Assembly (NCBI GenBank): GCA_937625935.1
Contig: OW569369.1
Coordinates: 1 to 64,000, forward strand
Source: Tetramitus jugosus
Taxonomy: Eukaryota > Protista > Heterolobosea
DNA length: 64,000 nt
Reading direction: 5' to 3'
The position numbers and the translations under genes were made by a program. The notes beneath the pieces are model-generated. The model was not told the origin of the DNA. It saw only the letters and a program-made list of their open reading frames with translations, and made no database searches. Positions 3,158 to 59,807 of the stretch are shown here, one piece after another (the stretch's first letter is position 1; every line of letters begins with the position of its first letter).

Positions 3158-4009
3158 GATGATGAAAACCAAACCTATATCATCATCACCACTATTATAA
3201 TCATTATAAAACAATGATATGAGACATAGACACCTTTACTTTTGTAATTGTTTTATTGGGTTGATTGAGCTCGCCCTACTTGTTTCTCACTTTACATGAC
3301 AGCAAACAATAAACAGGTAAAGTATAATAGGAAAGGCAAACAAACAAATAGGGTAATTTCTATGATTTCAACACGGTTCTTTCTTCCAACAGGTGAGGGA
3401 GTACAAAAGTGTGAAATGATGCAGTATTGTGATTTAAATTGACTCTTCACAATTCACTTGTTCATTTGTAGATGATGATGATGAGTGAAGGATAAGAAAG
3501 AAGACACAACTTGGAGGTAGATTCATTGACTTCCTATCTATCAAAACAACTACTACAGTAATTGAGTAGTGTTCGCAATCCAGTATCACAATTTGGTTGT
3601 TCATTTCAAGGTTCAAGACAAATGGAGAGTGTGTGTAGAGTGTATGACACAACAACACAATTGACACACAACAACAATAACAACAAGATGTGCTGTGATT
3701 CCTGTTTTCTAACAGAGGTTGATTTGAGTCTGCAAACAGCACCCAATCCTGGCTTGTGATTATTGTTACAAGAACAAAGAAAGACAATGGACAAGTATTT
3801 TGGAGAAAGAGAAGGTGAGAATAGATGATTATACAAGCTTTTTATTGGATTACTTTCAAAGGGAATGCAGTTCATGAAGAGAGAATTGCAACGCTCTGCT
3901 CTAGCAACCTCCGCGACTTTGTATCTCTATCAAACAATAAAATTGACAAATACTGAGACAATAGAAAGTCATTTAAAGCAATTTAAAGTTGTAATTGCAC
4001 TTGATTCGA

Positions 4010-4098
4010 CCAGTTGAGAGGAAAGTCGATTTGGTTGTTCGGTCATCAGTTCCAGCTCTGACTGGAAATTGCGAATTTGGTTCAATCACCGACTGGAA
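4010..4098. repeat. 89-bp hairpin-forming repeat, copy 1
   Basis: Identical to 4861-4949 except one base (ggtc vs ggcc); internal ttccag-ctctga-ctggaa palindrome. Confidence 0.9.
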
Positions 4099-4860
4099 TT
4101 ACGAAAATTGATGCGCGTACCAGCAGAGTTAGGATTCGAGAACATATGAAACAACTTGTCAAAAATAAACGTATCACCTTGAAAGAAGACCTGATAGTTC
4201 GTATCTACTCTCTGTCTCTTGTTCTACAACCATATCATTCGAAGGAACTCACGCAATAACTAGCGATGAATCTGAGTGCATCACGAAGAGCAACAAACAA
4301 TGGAATCGTACTGCAAGAATTACACTGAAGGAAATAGGAGTGCTAATTGAGCAGTATTGCATTATTTCATGAATAAACGAACAAAATTGAATTGATTGAG
4401 ACACAGACTCAACTATTGTATACCTGATGAAGGATTGGAAGACTGTTGAGATCTTAGATCTGCACCAAAAAGCAATATTTACGAATACTGAGACGAGAGA
4501 TAAGTATCCCAAATTAATTTGAAGTAATATTTGGGCTTGGTTCGGCAAGTTAGGAAAAAGGTTGATTTGGTTTTCACAGTTGCGGCCTCTGAAAACTAAC
4601 CCCCAGAAGAAAGCAATGGAAACACTCTGCGAGAGTTGCTTTGAGCAACATAGACACAAGAATAGTCTTAAATATTCAAGATAGTAGTGACTCGAATAAT
4701 AGTGATTCGATTTCAAATCAGTTTCAATGATTGTATAGCCGTTGAACGATAAAACAATTTTCGCGACTTTAGATCTCCGTCAAAAGGCATAGTTCACCAA
4801 AAGCAAGACGATAAATAGACTCCCCAAAGTAATGAGTAGTAGAAACTGTAATTGGTTTGG

Positions 4861-4949
4861 CCAGTTGAGAGGAAAGTCGATTTGGTTGTTCGGCCATCAG
4901 TTCCAGCTCTGACTGGAAATTGCGAATTTGGTTCAATCACCGACTGGAA
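4861..4949. repeat. 89-bp hairpin-forming repeat, copy 2
   Basis: See copy 1 at 4010-4098. Confidence 0.9.
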
Positions 4950-7123: not shown

Positions 7124-7859
7124 TGTTTTCTTTTGAATCGAAAGTGTTGTGTCTATGTGTCTATTGTAGAAGTCGCCCCAATTTTTTCCTGGACTGGGGC
7201 TACACTATCTATGCACGTACGGGCAGAGTTAGAACTAAAAAACAGATGAAAGGACCTGTCAAAAATAGGGCTCAAAAAATGATAGAAAAAGATGAGCAAC
7301 GATAGAAGAAACATTGCCAACAAAGGCAGGAAGATCTTGTTAGCTAAGGCTTGGGTTGCGACAAACTCATCTCTTTGGTTTGAAATCATTATTTGTTTGT
7401 AAATACGATATACAGTTTCAAATGAAGGTTGTACTGCACGTTGTGTTTATATCTCATAGAGAGGACAGTGGATACAACCTGTTCAATAATATCTTGAGGT
7501 GTTAACACGTCATAGGCATACACTCCAGGACTCTTCATACCATCGTACAAATAAGCAATGGTCTTAAACTGTGTAATATCATGATACTTCAAACCAGAGA
7601 GTTTTGACTGATCCACTGGTGGAGTCTTGTCCAACTTCTTCAAATCGCTCAGAGGATATCGATCCTTTTTGTTCCCTCCCTTTCCATTCAGAACAAATGC
7701 ACCTCCTTTGAACATCAAAGGAATCCAATCGGCTTCTTCTTCAATGATATCCCCAAGTTCATTCTTTGTACTGACTACTGTTGCGTCCTCGACAATGGAA
7801 CAAACCGAGTTGAAATTGATGATTAGAACGATCTACAATGTCAAATATATTCTTGTAGA

Positions 7860-10725
7860 TGGTTATTGTGAATGAAGAAAAAGGAGAAAAATTGTTCTTG
7901 AATCGGTGCTCTTGCACTGATGCTGATTCTCTAGTCCGAAGTGGAGAAAATTTCTTGAACTATGGTTCGGCAAACAATGTTGGTGCTACTCATATTAATC
8001 CACACTTACTCGAACAGAAGAAGGATCTATTTCTCAAGATGTACCAAGCATTGAGGCATTGAGTCAGCCAGAAACACATGGGTTCTTTTTCAGATTCATA
8101 GATAATCAACTAGATAACTTCATCAAGCAGGTCTTGAGCATAACTTGATAGTCCCTAGTAATGATACTCTGGATAGGACGGACGTTGGAAGCTATGGCGC
8201 TCCTATTGATTTTAACTGCAATTGGAGTTCATTCAAAAGCATCTAACTGTCGTCACTTCTTGATATCGTATGATGGAATCATTGTCATTCCTAGGTACAA
8301 GTTCAATGAAGGACTGGATCTCGTGCTGGGTGGAAGTGTATCATTAACTCCAGAGGAGTATGTATAGAGGGATAAGGTGAAGCTGGATGATGATCTGGGT
8401 CATGAAGTTCTTCATTTCATGTTACAGAGTTTGGAAGGTATGGTGACAGTTCGTACTGGGCATTGAGTTAAGCGAGACAGGACCCATGGAACAAAGTTTG
8501 TTATTTCCAAGTTAAAGGTGCTCGTTGATCTATTCTATAGGAAGGATATATGTGAGATAATAGCTTCATCCAGTGATGGTGATCTAGCATCAGATGCTGT
8601 CCATAAGTTTATGAATGACTACACAATTGCAAAGTATGGGACACCATGGTTCCACATGTTCGACTTTAGTCACAATACGAAGGCAACTCGTAATGCAACA
8701 ATGAACAGGCATCTACAGCCAGGTCAGCACAAGCTGCATATGAATGTATTGATAGATCTCTGCAGGAAGAGTCCAAATGTGAATGATGCTCTAGGTTTCA
8801 TACGGGACAGTTGGCTCAATCCACCAGATATCATGAAGATGAACCAAGCGTTGGGGTTAACTTCAAAACGTGTGCAGGATGCATTGAGTAACCTTCCAGA
8901 TGAGTATACACAAGAGAAGGAGATAGGGAATATGCTGAGTATTTTAGACAAATTAGACGGATGTAGGATTGCTTCATGGATAAATCCATGTCTCAAGATG
9001 AAGCAGTGACACAACTAGGAAAGGCAGATCCCTTGGGAACTATATGAGCTATATCTGTAATTGGAACAACAGTACATCACACCCAGATTCTAAGCTTGCA
9101 CTTCAAACCAGTAGACACTTGACAACGACCATCTACCAGTTCTATCTTATAGGATAGTTATATCTAATTATGCATCTCTGCTTGAAGCGAGTTGGAACTA
9201 CGTAGATTGTCTGCAGATCTGTTGTATGTACATTACCAGTGGAACTGCTGTTCTGTTGCATCCGAGGTATGCAACCATTATCATGTGTACTATCACTGAG
9301 GTTCGTGGATTATTCCGCTTCTGCGAATGTTGTGAAGCAGATTAAAGCCACAATCATGCAGAAGATTCTTTTGGGTAGATCTGAAGAAAGGAACCAGAGT
9401 GCATCTGAATCTGGAGGATGTGTTCCACTTCATGCAAATAGAACAGAGCAGTGATGTCATAAATGATGAGTGTGACGCGTGTTTTGAGGAACAGTTTGGA
9501 TCACAATATAAGAAGCCATTGATTATTGCATATTATGCTGGGAGACAGTGAACTTGAAGTTCTTCCCAGATGGCTGTCCTCGTGAGATTGCTGCTCGTGT
9601 TGAGGGTATGAGTGGAAGTGATATTCTATCTTGCAGATTCAATCCACACATCAAACCAGAAGCATGGAGTGAACAGAGTAGTGCTATCCATGGTGTTACA
9701 CCAGATGATGTTATTGGACAGCCTCTATTAGAGAATGGTGTTTCTGCGTTCTATAGATTAGTGAAAGTTAACAAGCGTTGCATACAACTCTAGTTTTGAT
9801 AAATCGAGGATCGGTAGCTGTGCATAGGAGCTTGTCAAAGAGCACGATGTGATATGGCCGGATGGAAGATGATTGATTGGCGATGAGCTAGTGTATGATG
9901 ATGACGGCAGAATAATTAACAAGCCTGCGAAGCTGTCTGAGATCTTTCAACATAGAATGAAAGAGTATGAGCAGATTGACTTGAGTCAGGTGCATGGAGC
10001 AAGGTATGACACGTATATGATGCAAAGATTATTACTGCAGAATTATGGAAGTGAAGAACTTGTGAGAAACGCAATTATAACATTGTGTAAGCAAAGCAAA
10101 GGTTCAGGATGCAAATGCTTTACCGGTTGCTCTGCATCCTGTAAGTGCTCAATTGGGTGCACACTAGAATGTAAGTGTATTGGATGTGCTATTCCTGTCA
10201 AGATCAGACCAGATCATAAACTGCCATTCGATGTTGACAAGCTTACTGTTACTGCCATCACGAAACTGCCTACACTAGAACTACAATTGTGTTTGTTCGC
10301 GAAGAACAGTGATATGAGAGGAACCAAATCTGTACTTCAAGATAGACTAGAGAAGGTTCAAAGTGGAACTACAGTTGCACCACCAACATCTGTTTCAAGA
10401 AAACTGAAGAGAGAAGCAGATGTTCAATCTGATACGTTAACTAGGGAGATTATTTTGACCATGATCAAAGAGCAGTGTATCTATGAATATCAACAGCCAA
10501 GTAGGACTATTGAGATACAAACTGCTCGAATCTGCAGATCTGCTAGAAGCGGGTGATGAATCATTGAAGACACCACGCAAGTACAATAAGAAGAAGAAAC
10601 AATCAGAACAGCCTGTAAACAAGAAGAAGAGAACTAGTAAGAAGAGAACTGCTGTAGATGCAGATATAGAAATATATAACTCTCAGCTGTCTTCCAAGAA
10701 GCCTCTCGTTGCTACAAGGATCTAG
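7860..10725 (+). pseudogene. Decayed P-element/THAP9-like DDE transposase followed by DEDDh exonuclease, Cys-rich CXC-like and SAP-like coding sequence
   Basis: Frame 8161-9009 (two internal stops) reads LISYDG...HEVLHFMLQSLEG...IIASSSDGD...DFSHNTKATRN...DIMKMNQALGLTSKRVQDAL; TLPVELLFCCIRG at ~9230. Then Y(A)GET...AIHGVTPDDV...HGARYD (exonuclease), CKCFTGCSASCKCSIGCTLECKCIGC, and LPTLEL...MRGTKSVLQDRL (SAP). Multiple stops and frameshifts; ends not found. Confidence 0.65.
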
Positions 10726-10829
10726 ATGAAAGAAACTTTCTTCACTGCTAAGGAAGCAATGCTTCCTTTTCAGAGTACTTGTATGGATTGAAGAGAACGA
10801 GTGCTACCATTGATGTCAGTCGGACGAGT

Positions 10830-11428
10830 AGTGGTGGAGGTGGTGGTAATGTAGGAAAGTGTGTTGAATAGTCAGATATGACATAACCCAATCGTAACAC
10901 ATAGGTCATTAGGCTCCACATTCCTCCTCTCTTATTGAAAAGTGAAATGATCTTTAACCGTGAAATGTTCATGTTTCTTCGATCGTTGATCAAATCAATG
11001 ATACTCATCCGCTTGAGCATTAACCCCTGCAGATGCATCAACGGAGAATGATACCTGATATCTTTGAATAAATACAATAGCATATATACAAAAAAGGATG
11101 CTACATAGGCAGCACTACAGTAGGGCCACATCAACACAAACATCTTCATCAACTGTTTGTACAGCCGTTGAATCATGGATGGTTTGACAGACAACAATGA
11201 AGAATCAACTTGATCTGTAATTTGTTGTTGCTGTTGTTCTTGTTGTATCCTCATATGTTTTCGATACATTTGATCGAGCTTACTCTTCAAGAACGGAACA
11301 ACAATCACATTGAACAAACTCACATTTTTTTGTCGTGTCGTCAGTGCAGTTGCTTCTCTATGATGGTGATGGTGATGAGAAGCAGTTCCTATGGCTTTTC
11401 TGTTCAAGTTCTTTGAGTGGTGGTACAC
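10830..11428 (-). pseudogene. PEX12: Internal fragment of peroxin PEX12 (Pex2/Pex12 N-domain; no RING)
   Basis: VVPFLKSKLDQMY...FVLMWPY...YMLLYLF...YHSPLMHLQGLMLKRM...LPPPPP matches PEX12 motifs; the N-terminus, the LEWW segment and the RING finger are absent. Confidence 0.7.
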
Positions 11429-15899: not shown

Positions 15900-16205
15900 T
15901 CATCGTAACGTCTCGTAGTGCTTGATAGAATGGAGTACCTTTCGATGGGAGTCATCAACTCGTTTCTTCAATTCTTTAGCCAGCTTAGTTCCTCTTTTCA
16001 TCTCCAAGTGGAGCAAGGAAAGAATATTCTTGGAGGCATTGATGTCTCTATTGCGAGTTAAACACTTAGTGGTTGCACACTGTTTAACACCTCTAACAAC
16101 AGACTCTTTCATCAATCCTTCTTTGTCTTTTCTTTGATGCTTGACTGAAGTCAGATGACTATGACACCCACAACAAACTTGGCTCGTCAGAAATTCATCG
16201 ACCCT
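15900..16205 (-). pseudogene. C-terminal Fanzor fragment (RuvC-II, Zn finger, RuvC-III), same family as the 55659-57587 gene
   Basis: VDEFLTSQVCCGCHSHL..VKH.R...SVVRGVKQCATTKCL..NRDINASKNIL..L..EM aligns closely with the intact copy; no Fanzor similarity upstream of ~16205. Confidence 0.85.
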
Positions 16206-16908
16206 TTCGGTGCAGGATCGTTTTCTTGGTAACAACTCCAAAATCTTCCATTATATTTAAAAGGTCATTCATCACATCAGAACTTGCCGTCTCTTTGAAG
16301 GAAGAGGCCCTCAAATCCGGACTGCAACAAGCAAACAAAACCCAACCATAAACAACGTCAGGCATGTTTATTTTGCTGGCAAGAATCACTTCGGTCTCAA
16401 ACCAATAATATGACTATTCCTCTCCACTATGACATTGACTCAGTGACTCGCAACCCTCGAAGAATGCCAGTGTATTAGATCAATATAGAGAGAATCGCTT
16501 GTACATGCTATTTGTTTGATCCTGGTATCATGAGTGATGATAATTCTTCAGCGTTCGTTGTTGCTGTTGAGAATTGGTCAATGGTATGGTACTCCTCAAA
16601 CTCATTCTTTGGAACGGAAGATGTATGTGTCTATGCTAGTGGATACAACGCGGATCACTACGCGGTACTCCGTGACGGTTCCCCAAAGCTTGATTTTCTA
16701 ACTAGACAAGTGAAACACTTGTTTGGTTATGTGAGCGCGATGATGACATCTATAAAACAATGAAAGGTACAGTGGGCACAGCACGTCTGAACCTATCTAT
16801 ACAACTTCATTATTAAGACAACTTGAGATATGGTCCACCAAATTGCGGGAGCTGATTTTATCATTTTTCGAGTAGGGAAGTGAGAGTATAGTATCAGTGT
16901 TCAACTAT

Positions 16909-55112: not shown

Positions 55113-55573
55113 TTAGGTAATAATTACTATCTCTCCAGATGAGTCTTCATCCACTTGTGTGCAAAAGTATATTCTAGCTTCTGGGTTTGCAAAAATACCT
55201 GTGTGGGATCGTAGGACACTTTCAACACCATTGAGCAAGCAAGTAAAACGGCCATAAGGTGTTGTCCAATTGGACTTCTTTGCCTCTTCGTACCCGTATT
55301 CCCCATCCACAATTAACGATACCACATCACCAGAGTAGAACTTGTCAGTCCATTTGGTGATGCTTTTCCTCGTAAAGGATCCATTGTTGGAACAACCAAT
55401 ATTTTCACCCTCAAGGAATGCTCCCAAGAAAACAGATCCTTGATCTTTTGTATACACATCCTGAAGAATGTTCTCTTCAATGATACCCAGCAACACCCAA
55501 AAAGAGGCATACAAGAAAGTGGATCTACATACTTCCACCTTGAGGTCAATTTTGGTCGTTCCTCTTGTGTTAA
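55113..55573 (-). pseudogene. 3' half of an F-box gene split by the Fanzor transposon
   Basis: In frame with 59377-59807 once the element and one TTAA are removed (...SRPI-NTRGTTKIDLKVE...). Confidence 0.85.
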
Positions 55574-55658
55574 GGATGTAGTTCGGTGAAATAAAATCCA
55601 TAATAAAAAAATTATGATTTCCCGAGAAGACACCTTAACGCTCCTACATAATCGGGAC
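55550..55658 (-). ncRNA. Predicted Fanzor omega-RNA (scaffold ~55658-55570, guide ~55569-55550)
   Basis: Lies between the Fanzor stop and the element end; stem tcccga/tcggga, hairpin aaatcataat-tttttt-attatggattt, and atgtag/ctacat pseudoknot with the TIR. Confidence 0.72.
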
Positions 55659-57587
55659 TTACATAGCAGCTTGATGGAGTGAGCCTTGGAGGTGTTCCAC
55701 CATTTTGATTAATTCTTTTGCGACCTTTTTCTTCCTCTTGAAGGCATCGGGACGTGACTGTCCATCCATTTCTGTTCTCAGTAGATGGAGCATGTTCTTG
55801 GCCGCATTGATGTCTCTGTTGTGAGTCACTAAACATTTAGTGGTTGCACACTGTTTAACTCCTCGGACGACAGAGACATTCAACGTTCCATTCTTGTCTA
55901 TTCTCTTATGCTTGACTGGCTTCATGTGAGAATGGCAATGATGACATTTCTGACTTGTCATGAACTCGTCGATCATTTTCACTTTGAAGTGCTCATTCAA
56001 CTTTTTCAATAGCTTTCCTTTTGGTGTTGGAGCATGTCCTTTGTAACAATGACCAAAACCAGCATTGCCCATCCCAATTAACATGCTTCTTCCATTTGCT
56101 CTCTTTCGAAAGTCATTCATAACATTGGCAATCGTCTTATCTCTCATTATATAGCTATCCCAATTCAGTCTCTTCACCTTTGGGGTGCAATAAAAATTCA
56201 ACAAATCGTCCTCGACTTTCAATACAGAATTGATGTGTTCAAGGAACAGACCACTTGTAGGTACACCGGCCTGTTTGATTGAGTTTTGGAGTTCATCCAA
56301 GTTCTTCTCATTCATTTCGTTCCATTCTGCTTTGTATTTCAACAATCGCTTGGAGTTTTTTGAATGATGGGATAGATGTCTATATGTTTTGTTCGACAAC
56401 TCCCACTTCTTGCCGTCTGAATCAACACAACTCACCAAAGTAACAATACCCGGGTCAATCCCAACCAAATATTCAGCACCTTCGTTCATACTTGTTTCTT
56501 TCTTTCTCTTCTTTGCTTCTTTCTGGCCCTTGGATTCCTTTGCCTTATTGTTCTTGTGATTGCCAACGAGTTGATGTCTGAGAACAACAGAGGCCTGAAT
56601 ACCGTCAGTTCTGATAGAGTCGATTTGAATCTTCTTTATGCCAACATTCAAACACTTGAGATTGTATTTCAATTCAATGGGTTCAATTACTTGTTCATTT
56701 CCCTTCTTTTGTCCTCCTGGTTTCTTCTTCTGTTGGAGCATGTCTATCAGGTCCGTTGTACCTATCTCCATGCATCTACATTTAAAGTGGGACAAGGGCA
56801 ACAATGCAAATGATTTTGTTCCATTGCCAATCAGAAACTGTTGAACATGCCAGTAAAACTTCAGCATGTTGTTGGTGTTGTTGTTCACAAAAGATTCATC
56901 AATAATCTCGTCGGTTTCAGCACCAACAAGTGTTCGAATCTCTTGGATCAACACAGGAATAGTCTCTATCAACTCTTTTGGAGGCAGTTTGACAAAATCA
57001 TAAACTGGAGTGACGAATGTCAACCGTCTGATAATATATTCTACGACTCTTCTGTATTCAGACCATGGGATTGATTGACCATTGTGCAATTGAGCCATCC
57101 TCACTCTCAAGTACTTTCTCAGTCTTTGTTCCAATGTGAACTTGAGCATGTTAGAAATATTGACATTGAGAGACTTGGCAACGTAATTGATGGATTTGGA
57201 TAACTTCTCACAAATCTTCCTTTGCTTGATTATTACGTCATCCATGTTGACTGACCCGTTGATGAGGTTGACATTATCGTCTCTTGTCTTCGACTTGCGT
57301 CCAAACAACACTGAACCGATTCGTTGAATAAATCCTTGATTCAAGAGAGGGATATCACAATTGTTCTCCAAGTGCCTCAAAACAAATATGTTTATAAATC
57401 TTGTGAGTCGAAGAGCAATCCTTGTAATCTCCAGAGCTTGAGTTTGTATGATTGGTAACAGAGTTGGATGATGCAACAACAGAGACTTCAGACCGACCTT
57501 GACCACGTAATGTGATGAGTATTCATTCTTTTTGACAGTCTCTCTTTTTCTCTTTCTCTTACCGTCCTTAGGCACGCCTCGTGGCAT
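55659..57587 (-). CDS. Fanzor (Fanzor1-like) RNA-guided RuvC endonuclease, 642 aa, intact
   Basis: RuvC-I LVGIDPG, GHAPTPKG, RuvC-II IDEFMTSQ, Zn finger CHHC...CATTKC, RuvC-III NRDINAAKNM; N-terminal NLS KRKRKR and VVKVGLKSLL; start MPRGVP at 57587. Confidence 0.93.
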   Translation of the reverse strand: MPRGVPKDGKRKRKRETVKKNEYSSHYVVKVGLKSLLLHHPTLLPIIQTQALEITRIALRLTRFINIFVLRHLENNCDIPLLNQGFIQRIGSVLFGRKSKTRDDNVNLINGSVNMDDVIIKQRKICEKLSKSINYVAKSLNVNISNMLKFTLEQRLRKYLRVRMAQLHNGQSIPWSEYRRVVEYIIRRLTFVTPVYDFVKLPPKELIETIPVLIQEIRTLVGAETDEIIDESFVNNNTNNMLKFYWHVQQFLIGNGTKSFALLPLSHFKCRCMEIGTTDLIDMLQQKKKPGGQKKGNEQVIEPIELKYNLKCLNVGIKKIQIDSIRTDGIQASVVLRHQLVGNHKNNKAKESKGQKEAKKRKKETSMNEGAEYLVGIDPGIVTLVSCVDSDGKKWELSNKTYRHLSHHSKNSKRLLKYKAEWNEMNEKNLDELQNSIKQAGVPTSGLFLEHINSVLKVEDDLLNFYCTPKVKRLNWDSYIMRDKTIANVMNDFRKRANGRSMLIGMGNAGFGHCYKGHAPTPKGKLLKKLNEHFKVKMIDEFMTSQKCHHCHSHMKPVKHKRIDKNGTLNVSVVRGVKQCATTKCLVTHNRDINAAKNMLHLLRTEMDGQSRPDAFKRKKKVAKELIKMVEHLQGSLHQAAM

Positions 57588-57899
57588 AATGTTATTGTAT
57601 TTGTTGTGTTGTATTTGTTGTGTGAGATGAATCAAACAGCGAAAAAGACAGCGCTTTTTAAACCGAGGTAGATGGCCGTTGCCGTTGTAAAGACAGTCTC
57701 AACGGAAATTTTTACAACTGCACCAATTCCGCAGCTTAGAGGAAACTGATACAACATTTATTGTATTTTTTTATAATATATCCACCTATCTATCCAATCT
57801 TGAACGCGACAACAACAACGAAAAACACAAGTCGCACAACGAACATCAACAACAACAATCAAATCAATCAAAAAGATGGAGAGTCGACAAGAGGTGTCT

Positions 57900-58547
57900 A
57901 TTTGCAGTGTGCATTGTAGATTCTCTGAGCAAGTTTCAAGTACTTGAGGAGAATACAAGCGGTACCAATGTGTATTGAATTCTCTTGACACCACCCTGAC
58001 CAAAGTGCTTTCTGGCTGCGGCCAAAACTTTAAACAATTGATCAGAATCGCTATTATCAAACAAATGAACCAATCTGGCAATCAAGTTCTGTTCTTCTTC
58101 GAAATCTTCGAGCAATGTTGCAGCTATTGGTGAGTCGTCAGAAGGTGAGAATGTTGTCTGGTCTTCCTCATCCTTCAACAGTGGACGAATCAAATCAAAC
58201 AGTTTGTTCACTTGTTCAAATGTTGAAATCTTGTGTCCATTGTCAAGTGCGCATCTCACAATGCTCAGTGCAATAAACTTTCTCTGTTCATATCCAAGAG
58301 AATGAATAATATCACCATACTTCTCCAACTTCAAAACTGTTAGCACATTGTTGTATGACTCGAGTGGCACCAACAACAATCGCTTCAACATGTCTACAAT
58401 TTCATCTGAAGCAAGTGCAGTGCTATTCAATTGACTAGCAATGTTATTAATAATCTTGTTGACATAGTCAGTGTTATCAGGATATGTTTGAAGAGCAAGT
58501 GTCATCAATGAGATCTGAATACTCAAGTTATCGGACAATTCAACACC
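57900..58547 (-). pseudogene. VPS35: Captured internal fragment of retromer subunit VPS35
   Basis: QISLMTLALQTYPD..DYVN, LLLVPLESY, EDFEEEQNLIARLVH, ARKHFGQGGVKRIQYTLVPLVF; no start or end of VPS35; frameshift near 57945. Confidence 0.88.
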
Positions 58548-58820
58548 TCTCTAATGGTATCAATAGTAGGACAGAATTTGACAAACGTCAGAAAACTCAC
58601 ACTCATCATCAGGTCACTCGCTCTCACGATGTCCTTCAGAGTGTTTGTTTTCTGTGCTTTTGCAAGTTTTTTTTGATGAAAAAATCTCTAATGGTATCAA
58701 TAGGACAGAATTTGACAAACGTCAGAAAACTCACACTCATCATCAGGTCACTCGCATTCACGATGTCCTTCAGAGTGTTTGTTTTCTGTTTTTTGCAAGT
58801 TTTTTTTGATGAAAAAAATC
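58548..58820. repeat. Tandem duplication, two ~137-bp units inside the transposon
   Basis: tctctaatggtatcaata...tttttgatgaaaaaa at 58548-58684 and 58685-58820, few differences. Confidence 0.93.
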
Positions 58821-58829
58821 AATGAACAA

Positions 58830-59150
58830 ATGGGAAAACAAGGAAAAGGCGCCAAAAGAAGACATAACCAACACCAACAATTGGTAAAGTTTGGAGTCAA
58901 AAGAAAAGTAAGAATAACCGATATACATATTGATTTATTTGTGTATCTAGTTGGTTCGTTCCTTGGTGTAGAAGATGTGTTGAATTTGGTATTGACGTGT
59001 CGGGATTTTCGATCTTCGATAGTCAATAATCTATCAACAATAAGGTCTTATATGGACAATTTGTACTCACACTGTTTGGCCGTTTGCAAGTCAGGCTTAC
59101 CGTGCAAATTGCAAAGGAAATTTTTTGTGCCTGTTTTGATTGCTTGTTGA
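58830..59150 (+). CDS. Short F-box-motif ORF (cargo, probably truncated)
   Basis: ITDIHIDLFVYLVGSFLGVEDVLNLVLTCRDFR resembles the F-box consensus. Confidence 0.55.
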   Translation: MGKQGKGAKRRHNQHQQLVKFGVKRKVRITDIHIDLFVYLVGSFLGVEDVLNLVLTCRDFRSSIVNNLSTIRSYMDNLYSHCLAVCKSGLPCKLQRKFFVPVLIAC

Positions 59151-59376
59151 ATCAACCAGTACTTGACCGCATCCTGGGCAGAACCATGAGGCAGTATTCA
59201 TTATAATACTCTTGGCTGAGACGGAACCACAGCCGGAACAGAACCATTGATGAGATGTGGCAACCATGATCGTAAGCTTGTGTTTGTGATTGGGTGTCGT
59301 GCACCTGTTTTTTTGGGCAGTCTGGAAAATTTATAGGTAGAGTTCTATTTACGTTGAGGTCCAACGAACTACATCC

Positions 59377-59807
59377 TTAATGGGTCTCGAAGCGTTGGTG
59401 ATTCTGTAAATTTGTCGGACGTCATTTGCCGTGAATCGAAACACCTTTCCACGCTCGTCGATGATCGGACCTTGAGGGTTCATGGTTATATTGCCCTTGG
59501 AATCCATAAGGTGGGGGCTCCATCTGTGCTGTCTTGTCATCAGCACATTGTACTTCCATGTCTTACATGGAAACATTTTGTCTGTCCTTGGTCGTTGCCG
59601 CTGTTGTGCTTTCTTTTCCGATTGCACGACCGGTGGAAGGGTATCAGGTGCGGCCAGGTAGAAGAGGCGCCACTGTGTTTCAGAGTCAGCAATCTGGTTC
59701 AGACGACGATTGGCAAGGAGGATACCGAAGAGGTCTTCAACAGGCAGGAAGAGAATAAGTTCTCTTAACACATCGTCTGATAAAATAAGGAGTTTCATCT
59801 TGTTCAT
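59377..59807 (-). pseudogene. 5' half of an F-box gene split by the Fanzor transposon
   Basis: LLILSDDVLRELILFLPVEDLFGILLANRRLNQIADSETQW F-box; the frame runs into the TIR after SRPI. Confidence 0.88.

Follow-up and report, generated by a model that had tools for sequence, protein, structure and literature searches.

The window analysed here, 64,000 nucleotides of Tetramitus jugosus DNA (contig OW569369.1, positions 1 to 64,000), contains a transposon of 3,803 bp (55574-59376) that carries a gene for a Fanzor, an RNA-guided nuclease, and interrupts a host F-box gene. The element is framed by TTAA at 55570-55573 and 59377-59380, and its terminal inverted repeats (TIRs) are perfect over 12 bp and agree at 14 of 15 positions when extended. 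This perfect pair of TTAA plus 12-bp TIR is the single one in the window; when the 64 kb were shuffled 200 times, such a pair arose at any position in 3 cases. The same borders and perfect TIRs had been given in an earlier note on this DNA, which described the element itself correctly and overlooked its 1.8-kb cargo, the split F-box gene, the putative omega-RNA and the swapped ends. The features of the locus are as follows (L and X numbers are our labels for other sequences and for sequencing runs).

55113-55573, minus strand: 3' half of the host F-box gene, in the same frame as the 5' half; a contig from an RNA run spans the empty site.
55555-55569, minus strand: predicted guide, the 15 nt of host flank past TTAA, placed by a published rule (PMC10711439, PMC13565253) and identical in the empty-site samples L084 and L085.
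55570-55573, no strand: TTAA duplicate on the right side, next to the Fanzor 3' end; in the predicted omega-RNA it contributes to the closing stem.
55570-55670, minus strand: predicted omega-RNA scaffold, with stem-loop 1 over the stop codon (55670-55640) and a long interrupted stem closed by TTAAGG (55638-55633) with CC plus TTAA.
55574-55588, no strand: right-end TIR, type A.
55574-55597, no strand: type-A right arm; near-identical copies run into a type-B arm at 55598 (L006 and loose ends in X5 and X8).
55659-57587, minus strand: Fanzor1 gene, 642 amino acids (aa), with catalytic residues and zinc finger intact, assigned from open reading frame (ORF), sequence, profile and fold.
57908-58552, minus strand: internal piece of Vps35 that has been captured, its limits inferred from loose ends in X9; it matches positions 330-515 of the Pfam Vps35 model, which has 726 (E 1.7e-41).
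58548-58820, no strand: tandem duplication, about 134-137 bp in size, which L005, L082, L083 and run X8 lack.
58779-59150, plus strand: F-box-like ORF, 123 aa (Pfam E 0.034, below the cut-off; Atlas F-box cluster 0.95).
59121-59376, no strand: left arm of type A, with the left TIR at its end (59362-59376); the sequences of L005 and run X5 part from the window at 59120, and the same arm is found at L010 and L048.
59377-59380, no strand: TTAA duplicate on the left side, predicted to form the core of the target-adjacent motif (TAM).
59377-59807, minus strand: 5' half of the host F-box gene (Pfam F-box, E 0.00095), one 295-aa frame across the empty site.

The insertion is real, recent and polymorphic. 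Contigs from three studies (runs X3, X5 and X9) join 55569 directly to 59377, skipping 3,807 bases with four letters ambiguous, and the empty site holds one TTAA and restores the F-box gene. The rejoined flanks form a single frame of 295 codons, which on the filled allele would stop after 152 residues, and a contig from the RNA run X9 crosses the joint. Run X3, possibly from the source culture, shows the empty joint at about one-haplotype depth, and this suggests that the insertion is heterozygous; the T. jugosus assembly comprises 26.3 Mb in 55 scaffolds and two haplotypes (PMC11106597). Were X3 a Hi-C library, a ligation artefact would be conceivable for its joint, X5 and X9 being independent. 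The uninterrupted site in runs of three studies thus bears out the earlier proposal of a recent insertion. Other alleles of the host F-box gene in the same three runs carry a 32-bp insertion near 59620.

The element belongs to a family of roughly ten copies. Contig depth, a rough guide to copy number only, is about 7-40 times higher over the element than over its flanks in two environmental DNA runs, and about tenfold over most of the Fanzor gene. A metagenome scan with the type-A end gave 73 matches, of which only L010, L048 and L042 are real; L010 and L048 are further host loci that bear this left end. The depth excess, these loci and the empty site fit the young, non-autonomous, multi-copy element that had been proposed. 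Further relatives were seen in passing. The window holds a second, decayed Fanzor fragment (15954-16252, minus strand), a 3' part that is 60% identical over 93 aa and lies next to neither type-A nor type-B ends. Two Fanzors of one metagenome (L002:2437-4521 and L003:1631-3862) are 61-63% identical and have no shared right end or clear TIR; they are possibly immobile or bear another end type. At L042:49-1865 a 40%-identical Fanzor, split across two frames in the assembly, has a type-A right end. In addition, a contig of run X9 joins 55693 to 58798, keeping the RNA end and the left arm and dropping the Fanzor gene, and is a candidate ghost or mini element.

The encoded protein is a Fanzor1. Its diagnostic residues comprise TDG327 in WED, D378 (GIDPG), E541 (IDEF), the zinc-binding C548, C551, C580 and C585, and D592 (NRD), with the catalytic glutamate six residues before the CCCC zinc finger; the RuvC-I DPG motif, this glutamate, the zinc cysteines and the RuvC-III aspartate D592 are near-invariant in 111 homologues. 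The nuclear localization signal of the earlier note corresponds to basic, NLS-like patches at 10-15, 359-363 and 617-621. A sequence search of solved structures returned SpuFz1 as the sole match (E 1e-13, about 19% identity). A profile built from the 111 homologues matched three Fanzor1 structures at 5e-98, 1e-76 and 7e-69, whereas Fanzor2 reached 4e-11 and TnpB about 1e-4. Likewise, the predicted model (pLDDT 91) reaches a TM score of 0.70 to SpuFz1 and 0.60-0.70 across Fanzor1, as against 0.24 to Fanzor2. Profile and fold comparison thereby answer the placement among Fanzor1, Fanzor2 and TnpB that had been called for, keep the protein within the Fanzor/TnpB group, and reject Fanzor2 and IS607 assignments. 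No database record of the exact protein sequence was found.

The Fanzor gene is under purifying selection, as judged from its substitutions. Of the differences that separate it from its closest copy, the 99%-identical L006, 11 are synonymous and 3 non-synonymous (pN/pS 0.07); against L005 and L082 pN/pS is about 0.16. These two copies differ from the window gene mostly in exchanged blocks, L005 being 77-86% identical over 56600-57400 and 97-100% identical elsewhere, which indicates that the Fanzor genes are mosaic. The exchanged block at 56600-57400 in L005 and L082 reaches from REC to WED and might alter target-motif reading.

We favour a 4-bp TTAA duplication over a TA duplication, short of proof. 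Among nine assembled ends, eight have TTAA and one has TCAA; two of the nine came from a pattern that already contained TTAA and seven did not. At all seven ends recovered without TTAA in the query the base at position -4 is T, as it is at loose ends in X5 and X9, and for this reason TTAA is the better parse. TA with 13-bp TIRs, which the earlier note had held to be equally valid, is accordingly disfavoured. A Zator-type 3-bp duplication is rejected, as the 3-mers on the two sides differ and four bases are ambiguous at the empty site. Sola2 elements are recognized by an AWWT duplication (PMC3627910), and this element duplicates TTAA. Both of its end types terminate in GG..CC (RR..YY). The termini of piggyBac are of the CC..GG type, and piggyBac-type ends are thereby rejected. 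Sola3 combines TTAA duplication with GAG-type termini and long TIRs; the ends of this element are GGA or GGT and its TIRs 12-15 bp long, which would be a poor match. Kolobok transposons, which occur in Naegleria, duplicate TTAA and have RR..YY termini, unlike piggyBac (PMC9587614). The earlier preference for Kolobok or Sola3 over piggyBac agrees with TTAA and GG..CC, Sola3 seeming the less likely of the two.

The family carries two types of ends. L006 is collinear with the window to 55598 and then runs into a different, type-B TIR (GGTGGCGGTC) followed by TTAA. Type-B ends are also found on L001 (76% identical Fanzor), on L004 (60%) and at loose ends in X5, X8 and X9. L001 is a complete type-B element of 2,166 bp with unequal flanks, TCAA at the left (395-398) and TTAA at the right (2565-2568). 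The 40%-identical Fanzor of L008/L042 ends in type A, and the last 30 bases of the window element match L008 at 25 of 30 positions and L006 at 15 of 30. In a quick version of the protein tree, the window copy is nested among type-B copies with L008 outside. End types and protein tree are therefore at odds, which argues that ends have been swapped. On the left, L005 and X5 depart from the window sequence at 59120, such that a core of about 3.5 kb (55598-59120) carries two kinds of arms; the type-B left arm is deduced, as a type-B element with cargo was never assembled in full. In folding predictions, either 5' RNA half combined with either 3' end keeps the closing stem. The simplest reading of these sequences is that ends were exchanged by recombination, with the right break in a shared inner hairpin.

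The stop codon lies just 85 bases from the end of the element, and this right end is predicted to encode an omega-RNA scaffold that closes on CC plus the TTAA duplication. Neither the TTAAGG past the stop region nor the terminal CCTTAA varies among five homologues, the most distant of which has 40% protein identity; folding z is -3.1 for the window RNA and -2.3 to -5.5 over the five homologues. The same layout is predicted for L001, L004 and L008; the full L006 fragment folds otherwise and the L006 arm alone folds likewise. In L001 and L008, visual inspection finds both strands of the first and inner stems altered. Since the pairing is nested, a pseudoknot reading is unneeded, and an Rfam search of the region gave no match. 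A scan for sigma-70 promoters, which have no bearing on a eukaryote, was likewise negative. In Fanzor1 RNAs described to date, the TIR and target-site duplication (TSD) lie within the scaffold, there is no pseudoknot, and a guide of about 15 nt lies beyond the TSD (PMC10711439; PMC13565253). The guide predicted by this rule has its one perfect match in the window at its own site, and on the empty allele TTAA is followed at once by a perfect guide target.

Between the Fanzor start and the left end lies a cargo region of 1.8 kb. The captured Vps35 piece is open for 200 codons (58538-57936), with a 5-bp insertion near 57942 that shortens the frame relative to most copies; it is present in many copies, with changes too few to judge selection. 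The F-box-like ORF is probably, on weak similarity, a second cargo fragment. The cargo is dispensable, because L001 lacks it. In the RNA run X9, contig depth is 500-2,100 over the cargo, as opposed to 45-74 at the 3' end of the Fanzor gene and 0-5 across most of that gene, contigs revealing neither strand nor level. Contigs of the same run over 57800-59200 are 100-fold deeper than those of neighbouring genes, and on the plus strand a CAA-rich leader precedes an ATG at 57877, suggesting a transcript antisense to Vps35.

No transposase ORF lies inside the element, in agreement with the earlier note. Nor was a transposase with type-A ends found at L010, L048 or L042, and viral scans for a partner gave nothing or chance matches. 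A decayed gene at 7.8-10.7 kb was considered as a KolobokD-like partner and rejected, having no matching TIRs and best look-alikes of the P-element type. The decayed transposase-like region (7293-10992) has a DxxH-like motif near 8650, an exonuclease-like part at 9548-9790 and a cysteine-rich, SAP-like part at 9873-10556; a 22-bp inverted repeat, matching at 20 positions, flanks it on both sides. Judged by the ends of the element, its mover would be Kolobok-like.

The explanation we consider best, with a probability of about 0.7, is a non-autonomous cut-and-paste transposon that is moved in trans by a TTAA-specific DDE transposase and carries a working Fanzor1 homing system. A transposase of this kind, Kolobok-like by the ends, would mobilize the element, and a transcript running through the right end would give the omega-RNA, its scaffold closing on the terminal CC and the duplicated TTAA and the next 15 or so host bases serving as guide. 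After excision, the empty site would present TTAA plus the guide sequence, Fanzor would cut there, and repair from a filled chromatid would copy the element back (restorative homing, PMC13565253). Template switching during such repair would also explain why ends were exchanged, why the Fanzor genes are mosaic and how host-gene fragments came to be cargo. The Fanzor core would fit between either of the two TIR types because the scaffold takes only CC and TTAA from the end.

Several observations weigh against this explanation, and some of them would be expected if the Fanzor were a passive or silenced passenger, the element having moved by transposition alone with the nuclease no longer homing at this site. 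The empty allele persists in X3 at about the depth of one haplotype, and Fanzor-coding contigs are shallow in X9. The filled right junction likewise reads TTAA plus target and would itself be cut unless an extra TAM base protects it; the TAM should therefore include an upstream base that excludes C, and at the four known left flanks that base is A, A, T and T, too few for significance. A passenger is nevertheless improbable given purifying selection that is strong even against a 99%-identical copy, the retention of every catalytic and zinc residue, and an RNA stem retained across the end swap; within the Fanzor gene, X9 contigs are deeper at the 3' end than elsewhere, which points weakly the same way, as evidence from contigs only. 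Two further difficulties concern the RNA and the mover: automatic RNA alignment finds no more than two compensated pairs, and the six closing pairs, being constant, lend no covariation support; metagenome and viral scans yielded no transposase with these ends.

The identity of the mover admits two variants that leave the Fanzor system as it is. The transposase could be of piggyBac type or an undescribed TTAA-specific enzyme in place of Kolobok, which we regard as unlikely yet the more credible of the two: similar Fanzor1 elements of insect viruses with TTAA or TTAN duplications have no superfamily assignment, whereas piggyBac ends differ from the RR..YY of Kolobok. Alternatively, a TA-duplicating Tc1/mariner-type transposase could act on 13-bp TIRs starting with A, the TTAA appearance arising from target preference and from selection on the TAM and RNA stem. 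The empty site is identical under both parses, the TCAA left end of L001 is imperfect under either, and Fanzor1 genes in Mariner elements with TA duplications are well known (PMC3627910). Even so, if the base at -4 were free, T at seven of seven unbiased ends and at the loose ends of X5 and X9 would have a chance of order 1e-4, and we judge this variant even less probable than a passenger Fanzor.

Beyond the TTAA-specific transposon with its homing nuclease, we tentatively raise a broader idea, which is possible and on balance doubtful: a Fanzor1 family may ride Kolobok or undescribed TTAA/GG..CC transposons, with the nuclease-RNA core acting as a portable cassette that needs only CC plus TTAA, passes from one TIR family to another when the repair that follows its homing recombines, and gains host fragments on the way. 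It would be the first such system.

Elsewhere in the window, an array of CCCAAA telomere repeats occupies positions 1-770, such that the window begins at a chromosome end. A 124-bp subtelomeric direct repeat is found at 3975-4098 and 4826-4949 (89% identical, 851 bp apart), and the named sequences most similar to the neighbouring RRP45 come from Acrasis, Willaertia and Naegleria, which places the host among the heterolobosean amoebae.

What Fanzors do natively continues to be deduced from TnpB of bacteria. In this young family, one expressed gene exists in filled and empty form, the guide can be read off, and the host is harmless and can probably be cultured, all of which makes restorative homing directly testable. 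In addition, two end types on near-identical genes can tell RNA bases that the transposase constrains from bases at liberty to vary, and let one follow directly how Fanzor1 passes from one transposon host to another. The protein is also a distant Fanzor1 (about 19% identity), and its predicted RNA is compact, at about 100 nt to which the guide is added.

Transposase-less Fanzor1 elements flanked by TTAA have been published before (HAmv-1, SFav-1, HVav-1 and MCi-3; PMC3627910), and the hint in the earlier note at an undescribed pairing of Fanzor1 and transposon therefore has precedent. No mention of Tetramitus was found in the Fanzor papers and the part of their supplements that was searched. 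The closest match in sequence, profile and fold is Spu-1/SpuFz1 of Spizellomyces punctatus (PDB 8gkh; PMC10432273; E 1e-13, 5e-98 and TM about 0.7). Spu-1 is likewise a multi-copy TIR element without transposase, with a short RNA region between stop codon and right TIR and two related but distinct inverted repeat (IR) types, at Fanzor loci and ghost loci. It differs in its 30-nt IRs and CATA TAM, as opposed to 12-15-bp TIRs and TTAA, and the Tetramitus family has intact Fanzor genes in both end types as well as host-gene cargo. The insect-virus elements HAmv-1, SFav-1, HVav-1, HAgv-1 and PUgv-1 (PMC3627910; PMC10711439), likened here by description and not by terminal bases, carry only Fanzor1, lack a transposase, have 13-bp TIRs with TTAA, TTAT or TTAN, and include TIR and TSD in the RNA scaffold; in contrast, they are viral, about 1.9 kb long and without cargo, and the fourth base of their TSD is looser.

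Kolobok non-autonomous elements such as T2-MITEs (PMC9587614, PMC6004289) share TTAA, RR..YY termini and short TIRs, and Kolobok elements are known carriers of accessory nucleases, although no Kolobok transposase was found with the Tetramitus element and Kolobok is absent from the list of Fanzor hosts in a 2026 review (PMC13565253). The Sola2-Fanzor1 elements of dictyostelid amoebae (DFa-1/2/3 and PPa-1/4/5; PMC3627910) resemble it in having an amoeba host, 12-13-bp TIRs, a 4-bp duplication and chimeric exchange of parts, but duplicate AWWT and retain Sola2 transposase or its remnants, of which the Tetramitus element has none. A literature search found no description of Pack-type cargo paired with an RNA-guided nuclease. 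Pack-type transposons (Pack-MULE and kin) are similarly TIR elements without transposase that hold an internal host-gene fragment, here Vps35 and probably a second from an F-box gene; the difference is that in Tetramitus the cargo travels with an RNA-guided nuclease. The architecture of the element thus has precedent; what sets it apart is that its ends were exchanged, that it carries cargo and that its empty allele can be tested.

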